From Magallana gigas (taxonomy: Eukaryota), in the NCBI RefSeq assembly GCF_963853765.1, contig NC_088861.1, positions 14,260,001 through 14,324,000 on the forward strand: DNA of 64,000 nucleotides, read 5' to 3'. Under the pieces are notes generated by a model. The model saw only the letters and a list, made by a program, of their open reading frames with translations, was not told where the DNA came from and did not search any database. Positions 20,010-62,170 of the stretch are shown here, piece after piece. The translations under genes were made by a program, and so were the position numbers. How positions within the stretch are numbered: the stretch's first letter is position 1; each line of letters starts with the position of its first letter.

Positions 20010-22821
20010 ATGACGGCACAAAACAGAATGTGTGTGTGTGTTCTCATTTTTACTGGTCGAGTCTTGTTGTCAGTTGGACTATCATCACAAACACCAGAAA
20101 GGTAGTTCATTGAGTTCATTTAGCTATACTGGCTTTTTCTGACAATCATTTCTTCTGTAACAGTTGTATTACATACAATATATTTTTTAATCTCATATTT
20201 CTTTTGTCTTTTTCGGAATGTCAATTAGTTTTCAACACTCTGAATTTACAGTATTGAAGATTACACCATTGGAATACAGTGCAAGACTTGGGATGCTTCT
20301 TTCAGTAAATGCAAAGGTCAGGGGAGAAATCTTACTTGCAATTTGAAACTGCTTTGTTAATTGTTCTGTTTTAGTTTTTTGTCAGCTTTGACACATGTAT
20401 AAAAATATTGTTCGTTTGTTTTCTTTACATCAAACATACAATAAATCTCCAGCTTCGTTTAATTAATTTAAATTTAGAAATTTTTAAATTTGATCATTTC
20501 CTTTTCTCAGAGTGTCATAGTGGATTTTTTGGATTAAATTGCATACCATGTCGCTACCCTAGCTATGGAAGGGACTGTCAAAAAGAGTGTAACTGTAATG
20601 AAACTTTCTGCAACCCACCGACTGGATGTGAAGGTATGTTTAAACAATTTTAATGGTTCACAAAATAAGTTATTCTTTAAACACTTATATATCTGAAAAC
20701 AAAATTTTTACATTCAGATGGATCACCTACATTACAACCGAAATCGACCTCAGCTGTCATTGCGCAGATCTCTGTTACTCGGATAATGACTTTGAAAACA
20801 AGTAAATATCATATTGTTGAATGGTTATGGAATATCTTAATATCTTATATCTTTATACTTTAACATCTTAAAATGTAGCTGCAGCGTGTTCTGTCGGTTT
20901 CTTTGGAATTAGCTGCGATAAACCGTGTCGATATCCATCATTTGGATTCCATTGCCAGTCAGAGTGTAGTTGCAGTGAGGAAAATTGCAACCACGTAGTA
21001 GGTTGTAACGGTAAGTTAGTGTTTTCTTTAGCTGTGTGTAATTTTTAATATATGTTGTGTTTGATTTTATTCTTATATGTATTGAAACGACAGCATGTGT
21101 TCAAAAAAATTGTTATGCAATTCAATGTAAAATCATTCTTTGTCGAAATAAAATTAATGCATTTTAAACAGAAAAATAATAATCTACATCTTTATCTTTA
21201 TCAACAAATAAAAAAATAAAACATTTTTATAACATCACATTATTTTTCATTTAATCGTCATCTGACGCATAGCTGTATATATTGCGACTCAGTTTTGGGA
21301 TCAAATAGGCGTTGGCATTATAATGAAAATAAAAACAATCTGTTTATGGCGCGGTTAAACATAGACATATATATCACGATTATTTGATCACAAGGAATTT
21401 ATGTTATTCCAAAACAGTTATACAATTGTGTTATATTAATAAATTTGACTTTTTATTTGTACATTTCTAGACATCTTGTCCTGGTCTCACATATTGTTGC
21501 ATGTTACAAAAGAGAATGTCACAATGACAGGGAAAAAATTAGCATTACATCATATCATAGTTATTTTTTCTGCTAATTTATTATCATTAAGGAAGGAGTC
21601 TTTTCTGGTTTTCGACTTGTCAAACGTAAATTTGATTAATTGTTCATAAAATCAAGATGAACGGAAATTAAAATAGTATATTTTTCTTTCTTTTTTACTA
21701 TCATACAACTTGGCATAGAAAAATGTAATCAATGTTTAGAATGGAACAAGGACTATATTTTTGGCGTAATATTGGCGTAGGAAAATATCACATGTTGCGC
21801 AATTCAGAATTGCTGAAGATTATATATATAATGAGTCTGTTTTAGCATTTTAAAAACAATAACAATAATGTCGGATTCTTTTTTTTACTAATGTGAACTA
21901 ATAATATGATACTTGGGTTTCAGAATATGTTTTTAAAATATGATTTGCCTATCAAATAACATTTTTATAAGCTTTTTAAAGCGCCCATTCTATACATTGA
22001 TTTTTGTGAAAAAATCACTAAAATCAGTTTTTCTCTCTTATGAAATGGTCAATATATTAGCTTTTCTGTCAATTTATATCTTTATATAAAGTCTTCATAA
22101 TACATGAAAATTATAAATATTTTATTATTGGAAGCATAAAAAAATAATCAACATTTCTTCAAAATTTAAGAAAATTAGAGGAAATGCGGGCTAAGCAATA
22201 TCAATTTTAGTATAAATATTTATTCCAATTTAGTAGTATAAGCTGATAGACACTCTCATGGTCTATGATTTCATTGAAGATTTGAATCTTCAAATCTTAA
22301 ACAAATGTCTACATAACTATAAAGAGCTACACTTATTTTTATCATTCTTTACGTTGAGGAAAAAGGTAGTGACCTTGACCTGACCTTTATCCGAAAACAA
22401 AAAGGTCAAATTTAGCTAAACTGAGAGAATCATTAAGTAATATGATCCGTTTGACTGTGTCAAAATTTCATGTTTTTTATTATTATAAGAAGTATGTTTG
22501 ATAATGAAAAGACTCCTTCCTTAAGTGGATTTTTTTAAACAAATCTTATTTTAGAAAAAAAAAAGATTCATATTATCGCGCGATCAGATGCAAATATTTG
22601 CATTAGATCAAAGGTTTGTGCACATCACTTGATTATTCATGCAGTTTACTATTATTATATATTAGGTCAGTGTCTTAGTAACGTTAAAACCATTTATTTT
22701 AGAGTCATCTACATTTTGTAACTCCGAAGAAGGTCACAAATTACTAGTACACAATACTTGTGCAGTCTCTCCCTCCATGCCAAGGTGTATTCGTTGGTCG
22801 GATGGAGAGCTGCAAGAGTAA
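20010..22821 (+). CDS. Compact two-EGF gene A1, predicted secreted (TM-less), ~202 aa
   Basis: Exons 20010-20101 (MTAQNRMCVCVLIFTGRVLLSVGLSSQTPE), 20252-20316, 20511-20633 (EGF1), 20718-20801 (linker), 20885-21010 (EGF2) and 22703-22821 (ESSTFCNSEEGHKLLVHNTCAVSPSMPRCIRWSDGELQE*). All GT-AG and in frame. No hydrophobic segment after the signal peptide. Confidence 0.8.
21591..22520. mobile_element. 930-bp Kolobok-type non-autonomous element in the last intron of A1
   Basis: Perfect 15-bp TIR ggaaggagtcttttc with TTAA duplicated on both sides. The paralogous site at 59364-59367 has a single TTAA and no insert. Confidence 0.9.
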
Positions 22822-23626
22822 TCTTTATTTGCTCGTTTGCGGTTTGGAAATTTAAAAAAAAACAAATCAACAGAAAACACATTTTAATAGATAAAAAAAT
22901 ACTGTTTGAGTATTTTCTTTAAGTTGTATCAAAATTGCTAAATACATTTTCCAATCCTTTGCTGAAATGGTAAAACAAGGCAAATTTAAAATCTTGGTGT
23001 ATGTATTTTCAAACATTAAGAGTACATATAAATTATTTTGTGGGACATGTTTGCGTGGATTTTATTTCATTTTCATGCTTATAAAAACAAAACGTCCATA
23101 AACGCTAAACATGGAAAAAAAACTTGGAATGGTGGTAAAGAAATCAAAGAGTTTATATCACTGTGTTACAGTGCCTCGTAATGAGAAGTGTTCAGCTTTA
23201 AATAATGGAATTTATCCCTACATATGTGGACATGTATTATTGATTAATAAGATGAATTTGTTATTCTTGTGTATTGTGTTTATCATTTTTTTTTAAATTA
23301 AAGGTTGGCTTTAAATAAAAGATCAATTTATTTCTCTCCTCTTAGTTACCAAAGATAATTTATAATAAAGATAAAACAAAATACGTTATAGATTGCTGAT
23401 TAAAACAGATATTGATAAAACTTTATTGAAAAGCAAAATTACAAGTCGGTCACGTTACTTAAACGGACCGTGGTTTGGATAAAAACACGACGTCATTATT
23501 AATTTCTTTTTAAAAAGGAAACAGCAATTTTGGTAAAATCACTGATGTGTCGTTTTCAATTTATGCGTGTTTTTACGAACGATCAAGTACTTTTTAGTTA
23601 GAAAATTTCTTGGCCAAATGTTAAAG

Positions 23627-59679: not shown

Positions 59680-60485
59680 TCTTAATTTGCTCGTTTGCGG
59701 TTTGGAAATTAAAAAAAAACAAATCAACAGAAAACACATTTTAATAGATAAAAAGATACTGTTTGAGTATTTTCTGTAAGTTGTATCAAAATTGCTAAAT
59801 ACATTTTCCAATCCTTTGCTAAAATGGTAAAACAAGGCAAATTTAAAATCTTGGTGTATGTATTTTCAAACATTAAGAGTACATATAAATTATTTTGTGG
59901 GACAAGTTTGCGTGGATTTTATTTCATTTTCATGCTTATAAAAACAAAACGTCCATAAACGCTTAACATGGAGAAAAAAAACTTCGAATGGTGGTAAAGA
60001 AATCAAAGAGTTTATATCACTGTGTTACAGTGCCTCGTAATGAGAAGTGTTCAGCTTTAAATAATGGAATTTATCCCTACATATGTGGACATGTATTATT
60101 GATTAATAAGATGAATTTGTGATTCTTGTGTATTGTGTTTGTCATTTTTTTTTTAATTAAAGGTTGGCTTTAAATAAAAGATCAATTTATTTCTCTCCTC
60201 TTAGTTACCAAAGATAATTTATAATAAAGATAAAACAAAATATGTTATAGATTGTTGATTAAAACATATATTGATAAAACTTTATTGAAAAGCAAAATTA
60301 CAAATCGGTCACGTTACTTAAACGGTCCGTGGTTTGGATAAAAACACGACGTCATTATTAATTTCCTTTTAAAAAGGAAACAGCAATTTTGGTAAAATCA
60401 CTGATGTGTCGTTTAGAATTTATGCGTGTTTTTACGAACGATCAAGTACTTTTTAGTAAGAAAATTTCTTGGACAAATGTTAAAG

Positions 60486-62170
60486 ATGGCGGCACAGAAG
60501 GGAGTTTATGTTCTTCTTAGTATCGGTCGCGTCTTGTTGTTTGTTGGACTATCAAGACAAACACCAGTAAGGTACCTCGTTCAGTTCATGTAATTTCTTA
60601 CAATCATTTCTTTTGTTATTAACAGACTTTTTTTCCTAATGTCTTTTTTTGTCTTTTAGAAATGTCAATATGTTTTGAACCCTCTAATTTTACAGTGTTC
60701 AAGATTTAAACACTGGAATACACTGTAAGACTTGGGATGCTCTTCTCAGTATATGTAAAGGTCAGGGAGAAAATCTTACTTTCAATATGAAACTCTTCTA
60801 AAAGTTTTTTTGTTTTGGGTTTTGTTTAATTACATTTAAGTTGAATTTGTAAATGTTTACATTCTATTTCCTATATAACCTAACTTTAAATTTTTTAATT
60901 CCTATTTCCTATTTTTACCTCTTTTTAGAGTGTCATAATGGATATTTTGGATTCAATTGCACACTCCAATGTCGCTACTCTAATTTTGGAAGCGCGTGTC
61001 AAGATAAGTGTAACTGTAATAAAACTTTCTGCAATCCATCGAGAGGATGTGAAGGTGTGTTTAAACAATTTTAATGGTTCACAAAACAATTTATTCTTTA
61101 AAAACTTGCATTATAGAAAAACATACATTTTATATTCAGATGGATCACCTACATTACAACCGAAATCAACCTCAACTGTGATTGAAAAGATCTCCGTAAC
61201 TCCGATAATAACTTTGAAAACGAGTAAATATTCTATTTTTGAATGGTTATGGAATAACTTTAAATAGCTATATTTTAATATTTAAATACGTTTTAAATGT
61301 AGCTGCAGCTTGCTCTGTCGGTTTCTTTGGAAGTAGCTGCGATATACCCTGTCGATATCCTTCATTTGGATTCCATTGCCAGTCAGAGTGTATTTGCAGT
61401 GAGGAAAATTGTAACCACATAGTAGGTTGTAATGGTAAGTTAGTGTCTGCTTAAGTTGTGTGAAATTTTTAATATATGTTGTGTTTGATTTTATTCTCAT
61501 ACGTATAGATAGACAGAATTTGTTGACCTTTAATGGGAAATAAAAAACAGTCTATCGTTAGCCCGGTTAGAACATCGACATATGGAGCGTATCATGATTA
61601 TTTGATCTACAGGGATTTGAAGTTATTCCAGAAAGAGTGATACAATTTTGTCTATTAATGAGTTTTATACATTTCTAAACAGCTCGTCCTGGTCTCACAT
61701 ATTGTTGCATGTTACAAAAAGGAAAGTAACACGGACAGGGAAATGAATTGCACTATATGATAGTTTTTTCAGCTCTATGATTATTAAGTATTTTTTTACA
61801 ACACAAATCTTTTTTTTTTAGAGAAAAAAAAATTAAACATTTTATCGCTCGATCTGATACAGATATTATATTTTGTATTTGTACAATTTGAAAGCTTTGT
61901 GCCTTTTTAAACATCATTTGATTCTTTATTAAGTTTACTGTTTATTGTGATATATATGGTCAATGCTATTATTTTAATGCCTTGGTACCGTCAAATTATT
62001 TTATTTTAGAGACGTCTACACTCTGTAAGTCCGAGGAAGGACACAAATCACCAGCTTTGATGTACATTACTGTGGTGTTAAGTGTTTGGGCGATTCTTCA
62101 AATCAGCATCTATCTATATTTAGTATTGCATTCCTCGTCGGCAATCTATTTTGATATAAGTTATTCGTAA
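60486..62170 (+). CDS. Compact two-EGF type I membrane protein gene B2, ~215 aa
   Basis: Exons 60486-60571, 60696-60760, 60929-61054, 61140-61223, 61309-61434 and 62010-62170. All 8 Cys are present in both EGF exons. Confidence 0.85.

Follow-up and report, generated by a model that had tools for sequence, protein, structure and literature searches.

Gene content of the locus

The window, a 64,000-nt stretch of the Magallana gigas genome, holds six small intact genes that encode EGF-type surface proteins with two or three modules. The account given in an earlier note on this DNA is partly confirmed, in that the six genes and their exon plan are real while three independent doublets are not, and its interpretation is partly supported. 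All genes lie on the + strand, with MTAQNR starts of A genes confirmed at 20010, 36591 and 57793 and MAxQKG starts of B genes at 23627, 47353 and 60486. All six follow the same exon plan, with intact ORFs and canonical GT-AG splice sites: a first exon, e1, of 92 or 86 nt, a microexon of 65 nt, an EGF1 exon of 123 nt in A genes and 126 nt in B genes, as described before, an EGF2 exon (132 nt with the acceptor used in RNA) and a terminal exon. The earlier plan had omitted a cassette exon of 84 nt, rich in Ser/Thr/Pro, that lies between EGF1 and EGF2 and is used alternatively; RNA of B1 shows both inclusion and skipping. All module exons are phase 1-1.

Among the A genes, A1 (20010..22821, +) is a GT-AG model with an open frame and no transmembrane (TM) helix. 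Its exons at 20010-20101, 20252-20316, 20511-20633 (EGF1, 123 nt), 20718-20801 (cassette) and 20879-21010 (EGF2) are followed by what remains of the last exon: it starts at 22703 (or at the alternative acceptor 22766), keeps 13 codons from the start of the TM exon and nothing more of it, and ends in a stop at 22819-22821; an older RefSeq/UniParc model, P0007 (183 aa), corresponds to a soluble A and uses the 22766 acceptor. The last intron of A1 carries a high-copy repeat of 927 bp (21591..22518), an indel in the self-alignment with a depth in the thousands in DNA and RNA runs alike. It is missing from A2 and from the sister species C. angulata, whose alignment is contiguous across the site. 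A2 (57793..59679, +), a 97-99% copy of A1 and likewise without a TM helix, has exons at 57793-57884, 58029-58093, 58288-58410, 58495-58578 and 58656-58787 and a remnant exon from 59561 whose stop ends at 59679. A3 (36591..39465, +; GT-AG model) encodes three EGF modules and a TM helix in exons at 36591-36682, 36825-36889, 37083-37205, 37288-37371 (cassette), 37452-37583, 38408-38539 (EGF3) and 39305-39465, and is 98.5% identical to XP_052710337.1 and XP_034330964.1 (262 aa). Its EGF3 arose by duplication of EGF2 within the gene, which left a hybrid intron/cassette scar at ~38240-38330. The proposal that A3 is switchable agrees with RefSeq, where the TM model XP_034330964.1 stands beside a soluble model annotated on this assembly, XP_065927605.1 (221 aa), that corresponds to read-through past the EGF3 donor into a 12-residue tail and a stop. 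A3 is matched by a fourth A gene, A4, beyond the window (window coordinate +66755), after which no B gene follows.

The three B genes each end in a TM helix and a 13-residue tail, as had been stated. B1 (23627..25686, +), defined by model and RNA, has exons at 23627-23712, 23838-23902, 24071-24196 (EGF1, 126 nt), 24282-24365 (cassette) and 24445-24576 (EGF2), a terminal exon at 25151-25311 (TM, tail and stop) and a 3'UTR that reaches at least 25686; its C. angulata orthologue is XP_052711734.1. The second Cys of EGF1 in B2 and C. angulata is a Phe in B1. B3 (47353..49260, +; exons 47353-47444, 47571-47635, 47828-47953, 48036-48119 (cassette), 48200-48331 and 49100-49260) is ~82% identical to B1 at the DNA level. 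B2 (60486..62170, +; exons 60486-60571, 60696-60760, 60929-61054, 61140-61223, 61303-61434 and 62010-62170) is a 96-100% copy of B1, and its stop at 62170 marks the end of the array as first described.

Protein architecture and family context

The gene models, which also bear out two or three EGF modules per gene, support the six genes as real miniature EGF-repeat type-I membrane proteins of 2-3 modules with a very short tail. The predicted proteins begin with a signal peptide and a 22-residue two-Cys N-terminal peptide. Next come EGF-like modules with eight Cys, of the MEGF/SREC/Tie2 kind, two or three in number and each encoded by one phase-1 exon, then an optional Ser/Thr/Pro-rich linker of 28 residues from the cassette, and a C-terminal part with one TM helix, conserved polar residues within it, and a 13-residue tail that carries no known signalling motif. 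Assignment to the EGF class follows from profile and fold similarity (Tie2, SCARF1, 6u11), because no Pfam family reached threshold for any module or full-length product. The module profile matched the EGF-like protein PDB 6u11_A (E 3e-12), the Tie2 EGF region (E 7e-8) and an N-terminal fragment of SCARF1 (E 6e-3), and the Foldseek list was topped by Tie2 and SCARF1 with weak E-values (0.06-0.1). Among solved structures, SCARF1/SREC-I and the Tie2 EGF repeats come closest in both sequence profile and fold rank; the oyster proteins, about 190-260 aa in total, differ from SCARF1 with its long cytoplasmic tail and from Tie2 with its Ig, FN3 and kinase domains. Like the engulfment receptors MEGF10/Draper/CED-1/PEAR1, the oyster genes encode type-I membrane proteins with the same 8-Cys EGF-like repeat (C-x2-G-x2-G-x2-C ... 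YG-x2-C-x3-C-x-C ... G-C), one per phase-1 exon, and related genes are expressed in haemocytes; in C. virginica, haemocytes express many draper-like and MEGF genes (PMC13070813). Unlike these receptors, the oyster proteins have no EMI domain, 2-3 modules instead of about 15-17, no Pfam EGF model at threshold, and a 13-residue tail without NPxY and without conserved YxxL or ITAM.

The window is part of a tandem cluster on M. gigas chromosome contig C9 that extends over more than 100 kb and contains at least 12 genes, and this cluster belongs to a hugely expanded, oyster-wide family of miniature type-I membrane proteins. We found 1163 candidate module exons of the family in the M. gigas genome and 1473 50%-identity clusters among public proteins, with top hits mostly of 100-300 aa. 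Many relatives of 150-300 aa exist in oysters, and small family members are present in Ostrea, Saccostrea and C. virginica. The remark that nothing of this kind had been described holds for the paired mini-receptor arrangement, on which literature searches found no paper, but not for the genes, which are already annotated (RefSeq names them CED-1-like, draper-like or MEGF10/11) and whose mini architecture is common across oysters. Nor does the array start at 20010: an upstream relative with three EGF modules and a TM helix, C1 (8732..14222, +), was located by tblastn with P0008 and shows EGF and TM frames, with an N run at 11358-11503 within its first intron, and further members lie downstream.

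Block duplication, anchor loss and mosaic evolution

The doublets A1-B1 and A2-B2 lie within one recent block duplication of an A-B-A3 unit, in which 18981-27147 (copy I) is ~97% identical to 56766-64000 (copy II) and similarity runs past the window. The claim that A always precedes B, three times over, reduces to one ancestral A-B pair, block-copied, plus A3-B3. Neither copy II nor the C. angulata locus, which comprises one A-B pair, a TE and a lone A3, contains a counterpart of B3. Sequence comparison shows that an ancestral A-B-A3 block, with or without B3, predates the gigas/angulata split and that its first A had by then lost its 3' end and the TM-coding half of its last exon; the presence of this block twice in the M. 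gigas assembly accounts for the apparent third doublet. A 6-kb transposon block between B1 and A3 (29373..35399), with a Harbinger-type transposase (30202-31520, +) and YqaJ/PHD genes (32184-33295, -), occurs in C. angulata and is missing from copy II. The A3-B3 spacer holds a copy of a 2.4-kb repeat (41115..43500, -), further copies of which lie at 15334-17707 (+) and beyond the window (+73817-76200). In the B3-A2 spacer, 6.7 kb past the B3 stop and 1.65 kb before the A2 ATG, an N run (56008..56143; assembly gap or masked stretch) falls in no gene model, and no exon or frame crosses it. The anchors on its two sides, 55920-55955 and 56498-56757, occur in the same order in C. angulata and at similar spacing (543 vs 457 bp); the letters immediately flanking the run did not align, so that the collinearity stops short of proving continuity across it. 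Orphan exons 1 and 2 of a family member of C type follow at 56479..56766 (+), the second truncated ~10 nt before its donor at the start of copy II (junction 56766, matching 18981); their C. angulata equivalents sit between sequences that flank 76406/76495 in M. gigas.

In A1 and A2 a 1.7-kb deletion removed the 3' end of the gene together with the half of the last exon that encodes the TM helix. The same deletion is present in C. angulata, and A3 and A4 retain the TM helix. The soluble state of A1 and A2 is due to this deletion and not to a dedicated secreted design; of the description of A genes as secreted or switchable, the absence of a TM helix from A1 and A2 and the two models of A3 are supported. 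Selection estimates, based on 40-44 codons per module, agree with a variable distal domain: EGF1 evolves fast, with dN/dS near 1 (about 0.6-1.2; dN 0.17-0.22, dS 0.17-0.36), and the proximal EGF2 is conserved at about 0.15 (about 0.1-0.2; dN about 0.04, dS 0.23-0.42). Trees across gene segments are mosaic, and the split into A and B lineages holds for the 5' half only (e1 to EGF1), whereas intron 3 to EGF2 forms a four-lineage star. The "A" identity is that of a recently homogenised 5' cassette (promoter, e1, e2, EGF1) on otherwise distinct gene bodies.

Transcription and alternative explanations

Splicing of A-type e1 to e2 to EGF1 was found in RNA contigs of two studies (A1 joints 20101 to 20252 and 20316 to 20511, runs X15 and X17), and splicing of B1 from EGF1 through EGF2 to the TM exon in RNA of one study (joints 24196 to 24445, 24365 to 24445 and 24576 to 25151), with a 3'UTR contiguous across the stop (contigs 25230-25538 and 25509-25686). 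This evidence consists of contigs at depth 3-8 from two metatranscriptomic studies; a polyA raw-read run sampled at 1% gave zero reads on cluster genes, and no A1/A2 transcript 3' end was seen in RNA reads.

The third doublet (A2-B2, together with A4) could be an assembly artefact, the other A1-B1-A3 haplotype having been placed in tandem beside the N run, 623 bp upstream of copy II. The trees leave the branching order of copy I, copy II and the C. angulata orthologue unresolved, as trichotomies, so the two copies differ about as much as alleles or species do; they also differ in transposon insertions and in the presence of B3, as oyster haplotypes often do, and C. angulata has a single copy. 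No close match exists here for two B-like proteins of a different C. gigas assembly (P0001 and P0005), which points to a locus that varies between haplotypes. We nevertheless consider an artefact rather unlikely: the junction at 56766 lies inside contiguous sequence, off the N run, with a clean breakpoint in C-type exon 2, and the sequence just past the N run is the copy I continuation expected from C. angulata, an arrangement that would not be predicted if two haplotigs simply overlapped. It seems quite improbable that A1 and A2 are transcribed relics turning into pseudogenes, their frames open only because the event is young. The deletion is older than the gigas/angulata split, yet three copies keep every Cys, the splice sites and an open frame; dN/dS between A1 and A2 is 0.47, a value that B1-B2 and A3-A4 share, and two studies show splicing of the 5' exons. 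Decay would fit the deleted TM and 3' end, the low RNA depth and a 5' half in which exons are conserved no better than introns.

The earlier note had also likened the A+B doublets to receptor/decoy or receptor/opsonin pairs. On this reading each doublet works as a pair in which A is made for secretion and B is its membrane partner, and selection maintains the pairing. That A1, A2 and the C. angulata A are all TM-less with frames open in three copies is consistent with such pairs, as are the soluble models P0007 and that of A3 and the fact that the distal module is the main difference between A and B. However, only one A-B adjacency is old and common to C. angulata, the second being a copy; A3 and A4 have their own TM, no B stands beside A4 or the C. 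angulata A3, the TM loss is a deletion scar, and the reads contain no soluble A transcript end, all of which makes selected pairs unlikely. Possible, if doubtful, is a single transcription unit in A1-B1 (and A2-B2), with A, deprived of its own 3' end, reading through and splicing onto the EGF2 and TM exons of B. Exactly this structure is found in the C. angulata RefSeq isoform XP_052711736.1, a prediction that overlaps the B gene; only 806 bp separate the A1 stop from the B1 ATG, and any A-B module join is in frame because all module exons are phase 1-1. An X15 contig links the A cassette exon (20801) to 24446 in B1 EGF2, and X15 covers A 5' and B 3' exons but neither A EGF2 nor B e1/e2. The link comes from one low-depth de Bruijn contig that has an odd base where the exons meet and could stem from an A allele with a B1-like EGF2 start, since the EGF2 exons are 92% alike; B also has its own start and an upstream region conserved with B3. 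Splicing of A into a downstream TM exon is thus suggested by the prediction and one compatible M. gigas contig, not proven. If real, it would make A and B membrane proteins with alternative distal modules and a common proximal module and anchor.

Possible function and comparison with known systems

Taken as a whole, the locus is probably best explained as a tandem cluster of a large mini-receptor family, with block duplication and a role in surface recognition. The proteins would be haemocyte or epithelial surface recognition and adhesion molecules, in which the fast-evolving N-terminal peptide and distal module would contact variable ligands and the conserved proximal module and polar TM would dock to a common partner, as the tail could not signal alone. 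TM-less A1 and A2 would give a soluble two-module protein or, via read-through into B exons, a membrane hybrid. Ligand, partner and immune role are what we infer for the cluster proteins.

In the Nimrod cluster, NimB members are secreted and NimC members membrane-bound, so that soluble and anchored members linked in one cluster have a precedent there. This Drosophila cluster (NimA, NimB1-5, NimC1-4) consists of linked EGF-type repeat paralogs in cellular immunity (PMC6852320). The oyster cluster, known from sequence, differs from it in modules that by inspection do not show the NIM-repeat consensus, in a soluble member that arose by recent deletion and in having no regular pairing. Clustered protocadherins and UGT1A, loci with variable and constant exons, resemble the oyster genes in working only. 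The oyster locus shows no sign of regulated exon choice as in those loci, only one join is predicted, and B retains a full exon set and start; if A distal exons do splice to B, the likeness would lie in neighbouring units with common constant 3' exons.

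Exon plan and transcript support

The six miniature EGF-type genes of the array (A1, A2, A3 and B1, B2, B3) start exactly where the earlier note had placed them, all on the + strand, and the exon plan that they were said to share is borne out by splice sites derived from the DNA and a six-way alignment, with GT-AG introns and open frames in 7/7 models (the six genes and A4, a fourth A gene past the window end). The first exon (e1) ends in a strong AAG/GTA donor in phase 2 and is followed by a highly conserved 65-nt microexon (e2) that shifts the frame to phase 1, after which each EGF-like module occupies one phase 1-1 exon. 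The distal module EGF1 measures 123 nt in A genes and 126 nt in B genes, and in B1, B2 and B3 the terminal exon codes for a short stalk followed by a TM helix and a 13-residue tail, with the stop of B2 at 62170 closing the originally noted span. Modules are few compared with the MEGF10/CED-1 type, as had been proposed: two in A1, A2 and B1-3 and three in A3 and A4.

Contigs from two metatranscriptomic RNA studies (runs X15 and X17) contain the joints 20101/20252 and 20316/20511, i.e. A-type e1-e2-EGF1. For B1, X15 contigs join EGF1 to EGF2 (24196/24445), a cassette exon to EGF2 (24365/24445) and EGF2 to the TM exon (24576/25151), and continue unbroken past the stop, reaching at least 25686 in the 3'UTR. 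The RNA joints define the proximal module EGF2 as 132 nt, with an acceptor 6 nt upstream of the one first considered. They also revealed the cassette, an 84-nt exon between EGF1 and EGF2 that is both included and skipped in B1 and encodes a Ser/Thr/Pro-rich linker of 28 residues starting with DGSPT. RefSeq models of C. angulata and M. gigas contain this cassette and match our models at 96-98%. Depth of the RNA contigs on the genes was low (3-8), and the raw polyA RNA run X21 had no reads on them at ~1% sampling, covering only the high-copy repeat 21591-22518, which is not evidence against expression. Two further candidate structures were discarded: a short first exon with donor G/GTCG in phase 1 and no microexon, since the RNA joints use the AAG/GTA donor and the 65-nt microexon, and a donor directly after the TM (TTA/GTATTG in B1), which RNA contigs cross unbroken and where A3 and B3 have no GT. 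One X15 contig that ends at the EGF2 donor of B1 (24576) continues with 24 letters located at 30168, 34 bp ahead of a Harbinger-type transposase ORF; these letters are found twice more in the genome (on contigs C1 and C5), and the contig may represent a chimeric B1-transposon transcript that skips the TM exon.

Locus organization and a probable block duplication

The assembly examined comprises 564 Mb in 29 contigs, and the locus, on contig C9 (14,260,001-14,324,000), was analysed with flanks of 40 kb on each side of the window, which has a GC content of 31% and two N runs (11358-11503 and 56008-56143); positions preceded by + lie past its end. Self-comparison revealed a block present twice in the assembly, with 18981-27147 matching 56766-64000 at ~97% identity and a 927-bp high-copy repeat in the last intron of A1 as the sole large difference. 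A3 (36141-39856) and A4 (starting at +66755) are 97.6% identical. We refer to the unit with A1, B1, A3 and B3 as copy I and to the unit from 56766 with A2, B2 and A4 as copy II. A4, with three modules and a TM, has no B downstream and is followed by the sequences that come after B3 in copy I and then by a C-type gene. The gene order is C1, the unit A1-B1-TE-A3-TE-B3-X-Y, the N run, an orphan C-type e1/e2, the unit A2-B2-A4-X'-Y'-TE, and finally C2, C3, D and E.

At the C. angulata locus (ang1, in an assembly reached via RefSeq proteins) there is one A, one B, the same 6-kb transposon block and one A3, and neither B3 nor a second block copy was seen within the readable parts of that assembly. 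B3 is missing in copy II, and A4 and the C. angulata A3 have no adjoining B. Read together, these comparisons reduce the three regular A+B doublets of the earlier note to a single old A-B adjacency and its copy, together with an A3-B3 adjacency that neither copy II nor the sister species has. A recurrent, conserved pairing was thus not recovered, and both the pairing rule and the decoy interpretation come out weaker, while the original observation was largely right in its details.

Copy II is probably a real, possibly polymorphic, duplication, and the alternative that it is an assembly artefact seems unlikely, although several features speak for the latter. The second N run lies 623 bp ahead of copy II, trees leave the two copies and their C. 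angulata orthologue in unresolved trichotomies, and the copies differ in transposon insertions and in B3. Haplotypes also seem to differ in gene content at the locus: P0001 and P0005, B-like proteins annotated on an earlier C. gigas assembly with accession numbers between those of the A3 and D genes, have no match above ~85% here (nearest gene 84% and 75%, respectively), which points to presence/absence variation affecting whole genes. Evidence against an artefact is that the junction at 56766 falls within contiguous sequence as a clean breakpoint, cutting a C-type exon 2 ~10 nt before its donor, and the sequence right after the N run is the expected successor of copy I according to C. angulata, which a simple haplotig overlap does not predict.

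The N run itself (56008-56143) falls in the spacer between B3 (stop 49258-49260) and A2 (ATG 57793), and no gene model or frame crosses it. To its left, 55920-55955 aligns to ang1 31628-31663, and to its right, 56498-56757 aligns to ang1 32120-32371; these anchors have the same order in both species and a similar spacing, of 543 bp (136 N included) vs 457 bp in C. angulata. No alignment was found for the bases directly touching the run, so continuity across it is plausible only. DNA contigs of run X3 follow a single path, with 3/10 differences agreeing with copy II, a comparison that is uninformative on haplotype versus duplication because of bubble popping in contigs.

Several other elements mark the surroundings. 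A C-type gene (56479-56766 and +76406-77587) appears to be split around copy II, with its first two exons just before it and the EGF exons (from +77587) after it; the e1/e2 expected after copy II are missing, with 89 bp there vs ~700 bp in C. angulata, and the gene is probably broken in this assembly. A 2.4-kb repeat occurs in three copies at 95-96% identity (15334-17707, + strand; 41115-43500, - strand; +73817-76200, - strand), which occupy non-equivalent sites in copies I and II and are handy markers for the order of events. The composite mobile block at 29373-35399, with HTH_Tnp_4/DDE_Tnp_4 transposase ORFs on the + strand (30202-31520) and YqaJ-recombinase/PHD-finger ORFs and a further ORF (34838-35257) on the - strand, is at the equivalent site in C. 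angulata and missing in copy II. Upstream, the relative C1 (8732-14222; three modules and a TM) contains the first N run within its first intron and resembles a 262-aa protein of a 1028-nt Logan contig, necessarily an mRNA. Still further upstream, open frames with an 8-Cys module pattern at 180-395 and 2362-2538 (+ strand) probably belong to another family member running off the window start.

Loss of the membrane anchor in A1 and A2

In alignment, the 3' region of A1 tracks A3 and B1 along the whole last intron and for 13 codons into the TM exon (from 22703), and then jumps by 1.7 kb (39349 to 41022 in A3 terms, 25195 to 26883 in B1 terms) into a downstream repeat, where the frame continues for 26 codons before a stop. 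The TM, the tail, the original stop and the 3'UTR are missing. The same deletion structure is present in A2 and in the C. angulata A gene, whose alignment is contiguous across it, and the deletion is therefore older than the split of the two species. In all three genes no Cys has been lost, the splice sites are all intact and the frame is open, and the A1-A2 dN/dS of 0.47 is similar to those of B1-B2 and A3-A4. A3 and A4 have a normal TM exon, and the description of A3 as switchable agrees with RefSeq, where a TM form (262 aa) is modelled alongside a soluble read-through form annotated on this assembly (XP_065927605.1, 221 aa), with a stop 12 codons past the EGF3 donor.

The products of the anchorless genes would be a soluble two-module protein or a hybrid on a B anchor. 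A soluble form is represented by P0007, a 183-aa protein from an older C. gigas model in which EGF2 is spliced to an acceptor at 22766 within the remnant exon; no reads or contigs with an A transcript ending on a TM-less exon were found in the RNA runs examined, at a contig depth of 3-8. Splicing of A into a downstream TM exon, which the earlier note had set against its reading of secreted A genes, is suggested by the C. angulata isoform XP_052711736.1 (262 aa), where A exons are joined to EGF2 and the TM exon of B and the model overlaps the B gene. In M. gigas, one X15 contig leads from an A-type EGF1 through the A cassette exon (20801) to 24446 in EGF2 of B1, and X15 covers the A 5' exons and the B 3' exons and leaves out A EGF2 and B e1/e2, which fits A-to-B read-through splicing. 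The evidence is, however, one de Bruijn contig of low depth in which the joint has an odd base, and this contig could stem from an A allele instead, the EGF2 exons being 92% alike, so that read-through from A to B is suggested rather than proven.

Evolution of modules and gene bodies

The variable distal domain that had been postulated is evident in every pair of genes compared, with Nei-Gojobori counts that are small and a pattern that is always the same: EGF1 has a dN of 0.17-0.22 at a dS of 0.17-0.36 with all Cys kept, vs a dN of ~0.04 at a dS of 0.23-0.42 in EGF2. Rates in the signal peptide and N-terminal peptide are like those of EGF1, and the TM exon is intermediate. The EGF2 exons are uniformly 92% identical; gene conversion was rejected as an explanation, since their synonymous divergence is as high as elsewhere. 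In the 5' half, exons are no better conserved between A and B than introns.

In trees, the A/B split is confined to e1-EGF1, where A genes differ by no more than 3-4%, and the region from intron 3 to EGF2 forms a star of the A1 group, the A3 group, the B1 group and B3. This contrast is best read as "A" being a 5' cassette, homogenised before the gigas/angulata split, that sits on distinct gene bodies. The third module of A3 is an internal duplicate of EGF2. The duplication is marked by a scar at 38240-38330, in which the intron upstream of the TM exon is fused to the final 19 nt of the cassette exon; the AG and GT sites persist, so that a 19-nt pseudo-exon remains. Some modules have an unusual Cys complement: in EGF1 of B1 (24073-24195), Phe replaces the second Cys and Gly replaces the Arg after the third Cys, B2 and the C. 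angulata B being canonical there, and in EGF2 of the C. angulata B, Phe replaces a Cys. Unpaired-Cys variants thus exist in otherwise intact genes.

Module class, known systems and family size

A profile built from 61 family members and searched against solved structures matched an EGF-like domain protein (PDB 6u11_A, with two modules aligned at E 3.4e-12), the EGF repeats of Tie2 (7e-8) and an N-terminal fragment of SCARF1 (6e-3). The family alignment has invariant Cys and Gly columns in a Cys-rich repeat of ~43 residues. The AF2 model reached a pLDDT of 88-96 across EGF1 and EGF3, and the best Foldseek rows were again Tie2 and SCARF1, albeit weak (E 0.06-0.1); a wide VIA-align search with the whole model returned coiled-coil or helix matches to the TM helix only and is uninformative on the modules. 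The profile matches identify the modules as EGF-like repeats of the MEGF/SREC/Tie2 kind, offset such that every exon spans C-x2-G-x2-G-x2-C to G-C. No Pfam family reached threshold for single modules or full-length orthologues, the sole signal being EGF_PEAR1L below cut-off in a Saccostrea relative (17.5 bits vs 37.5 needed).

CED-1, Draper and MEGF10 possess an N-terminal EMI domain, ~15 or more EGF repeats, and a tail with NPxY and YxxL/ITAM motifs recruiting CED-6/GULP and Shark/Syk. In contrast, the oyster genes have only ~22 residues with two Cys between signal peptide and first module and no Pfam EMI match, two or three modules, and a 13-residue tail with no NPxY and no conserved YxxL (the position reads YFNI/YFDI in B1/B2 vs QLNI/QLKI in A3, A4 and B3). 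They are therefore not CED-1/Draper/MEGF10 in the defining sense, and the names "draper", "CED-1-like" and "MEGF10/11" attached to these genes are misleading, because the EMI domain and the signalling tail are missing. The NIM repeat of the Nimrod family has the consensus CxPxCxxxCxNGxCxxPxxCxCxxGY. By inspection, the oyster modules do not match this consensus, with no CxPxC start and no NG motif.

A genome search with one member gave 1163 first-look candidate exons, and 152 exons at E <= 1e-5 among ~150 scored of these, clustering on contigs C9 (several places), C3, C10 and C2. Among 1.84 billion cluster representatives there were 1473 matches at E <= 1e-3, and the best 150 of them are mostly 100-300 aa long, many aligning from signal peptide to TM; a Solemya relative has 2443 aa. 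The miniature design is therefore the norm of a large oyster family and not peculiar to this locus. Ostrea edulis, C. virginica and two Saccostrea species contribute named relatives, labelled SCARF1-like, MEGF6/10/11, draper-like and CED-1-like. The arrangement had been thought undescribed, and no paper was found on this subfamily or arrangement, but annotations already exist for these genes, which belong to a very large family. Literature on oyster MEGF10 or draper-like expansions yielded transcriptome lists only, and a study of C. virginica haemocytes listed draper-like and MEGF transcripts by the dozen as differing among haemocyte types (PMC13070813).

Significance and possible function

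The locus offers a clean, small example of how a recognition family diversifies, by duplicating a block, homogenising a 5' cassette between gene bodies, duplicating a module internally, splicing a linker alternatively, losing an anchor by deletion and possibly splicing neighbours together by read-through. Bivalves are not known to have adaptive immunity, and they depend on very large, fast-changing recognition gene families. If the distal module binds microbial or self ligands, these proteins of ~200 residues would lend themselves unusually well to studies of binding and structure. What remains of interest at the locus is its variability between haplotypes and the possibility that neighbouring genes are joined by read-through splicing.

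We infer that the proteins would act as recognition or adhesion molecules on the surface of haemocytes or barrier tissues, where the N-terminal peptide and distal module would contact variable ligands and the Ser/Thr/Pro cassette would probably serve as an O-glycosylated spacer altering reach. Since every module exon is phase 1-1 and a member of the array lacks its anchor and 3' end, splicing into the next gene is possible, and the tandem array might, speculatively and rather improbably, act as a combinatorial ectodomain generator in which transcripts begun in one gene take their proximal EGF and TM exons from the gene that follows. A shared conserved stalk and anchor would then display alternative distal modules that evolve fast, whether or not a mucin-like spacer is included. 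If true, this would amount to a nascent variable/constant organisation like that of protocadherins or UGT1A, in an invertebrate recognition family, at a locus whose gene content varies between haplotypes. In the recognition or adhesion role outlined first, the conserved proximal module and TM helix would serve a shared partner, because the tail is too short for signalling. Gln and Tyr are conserved in the TM helix, within LQISIY for types A, B and D, VQCVIY for type C and LQFSVY for Saccostrea.
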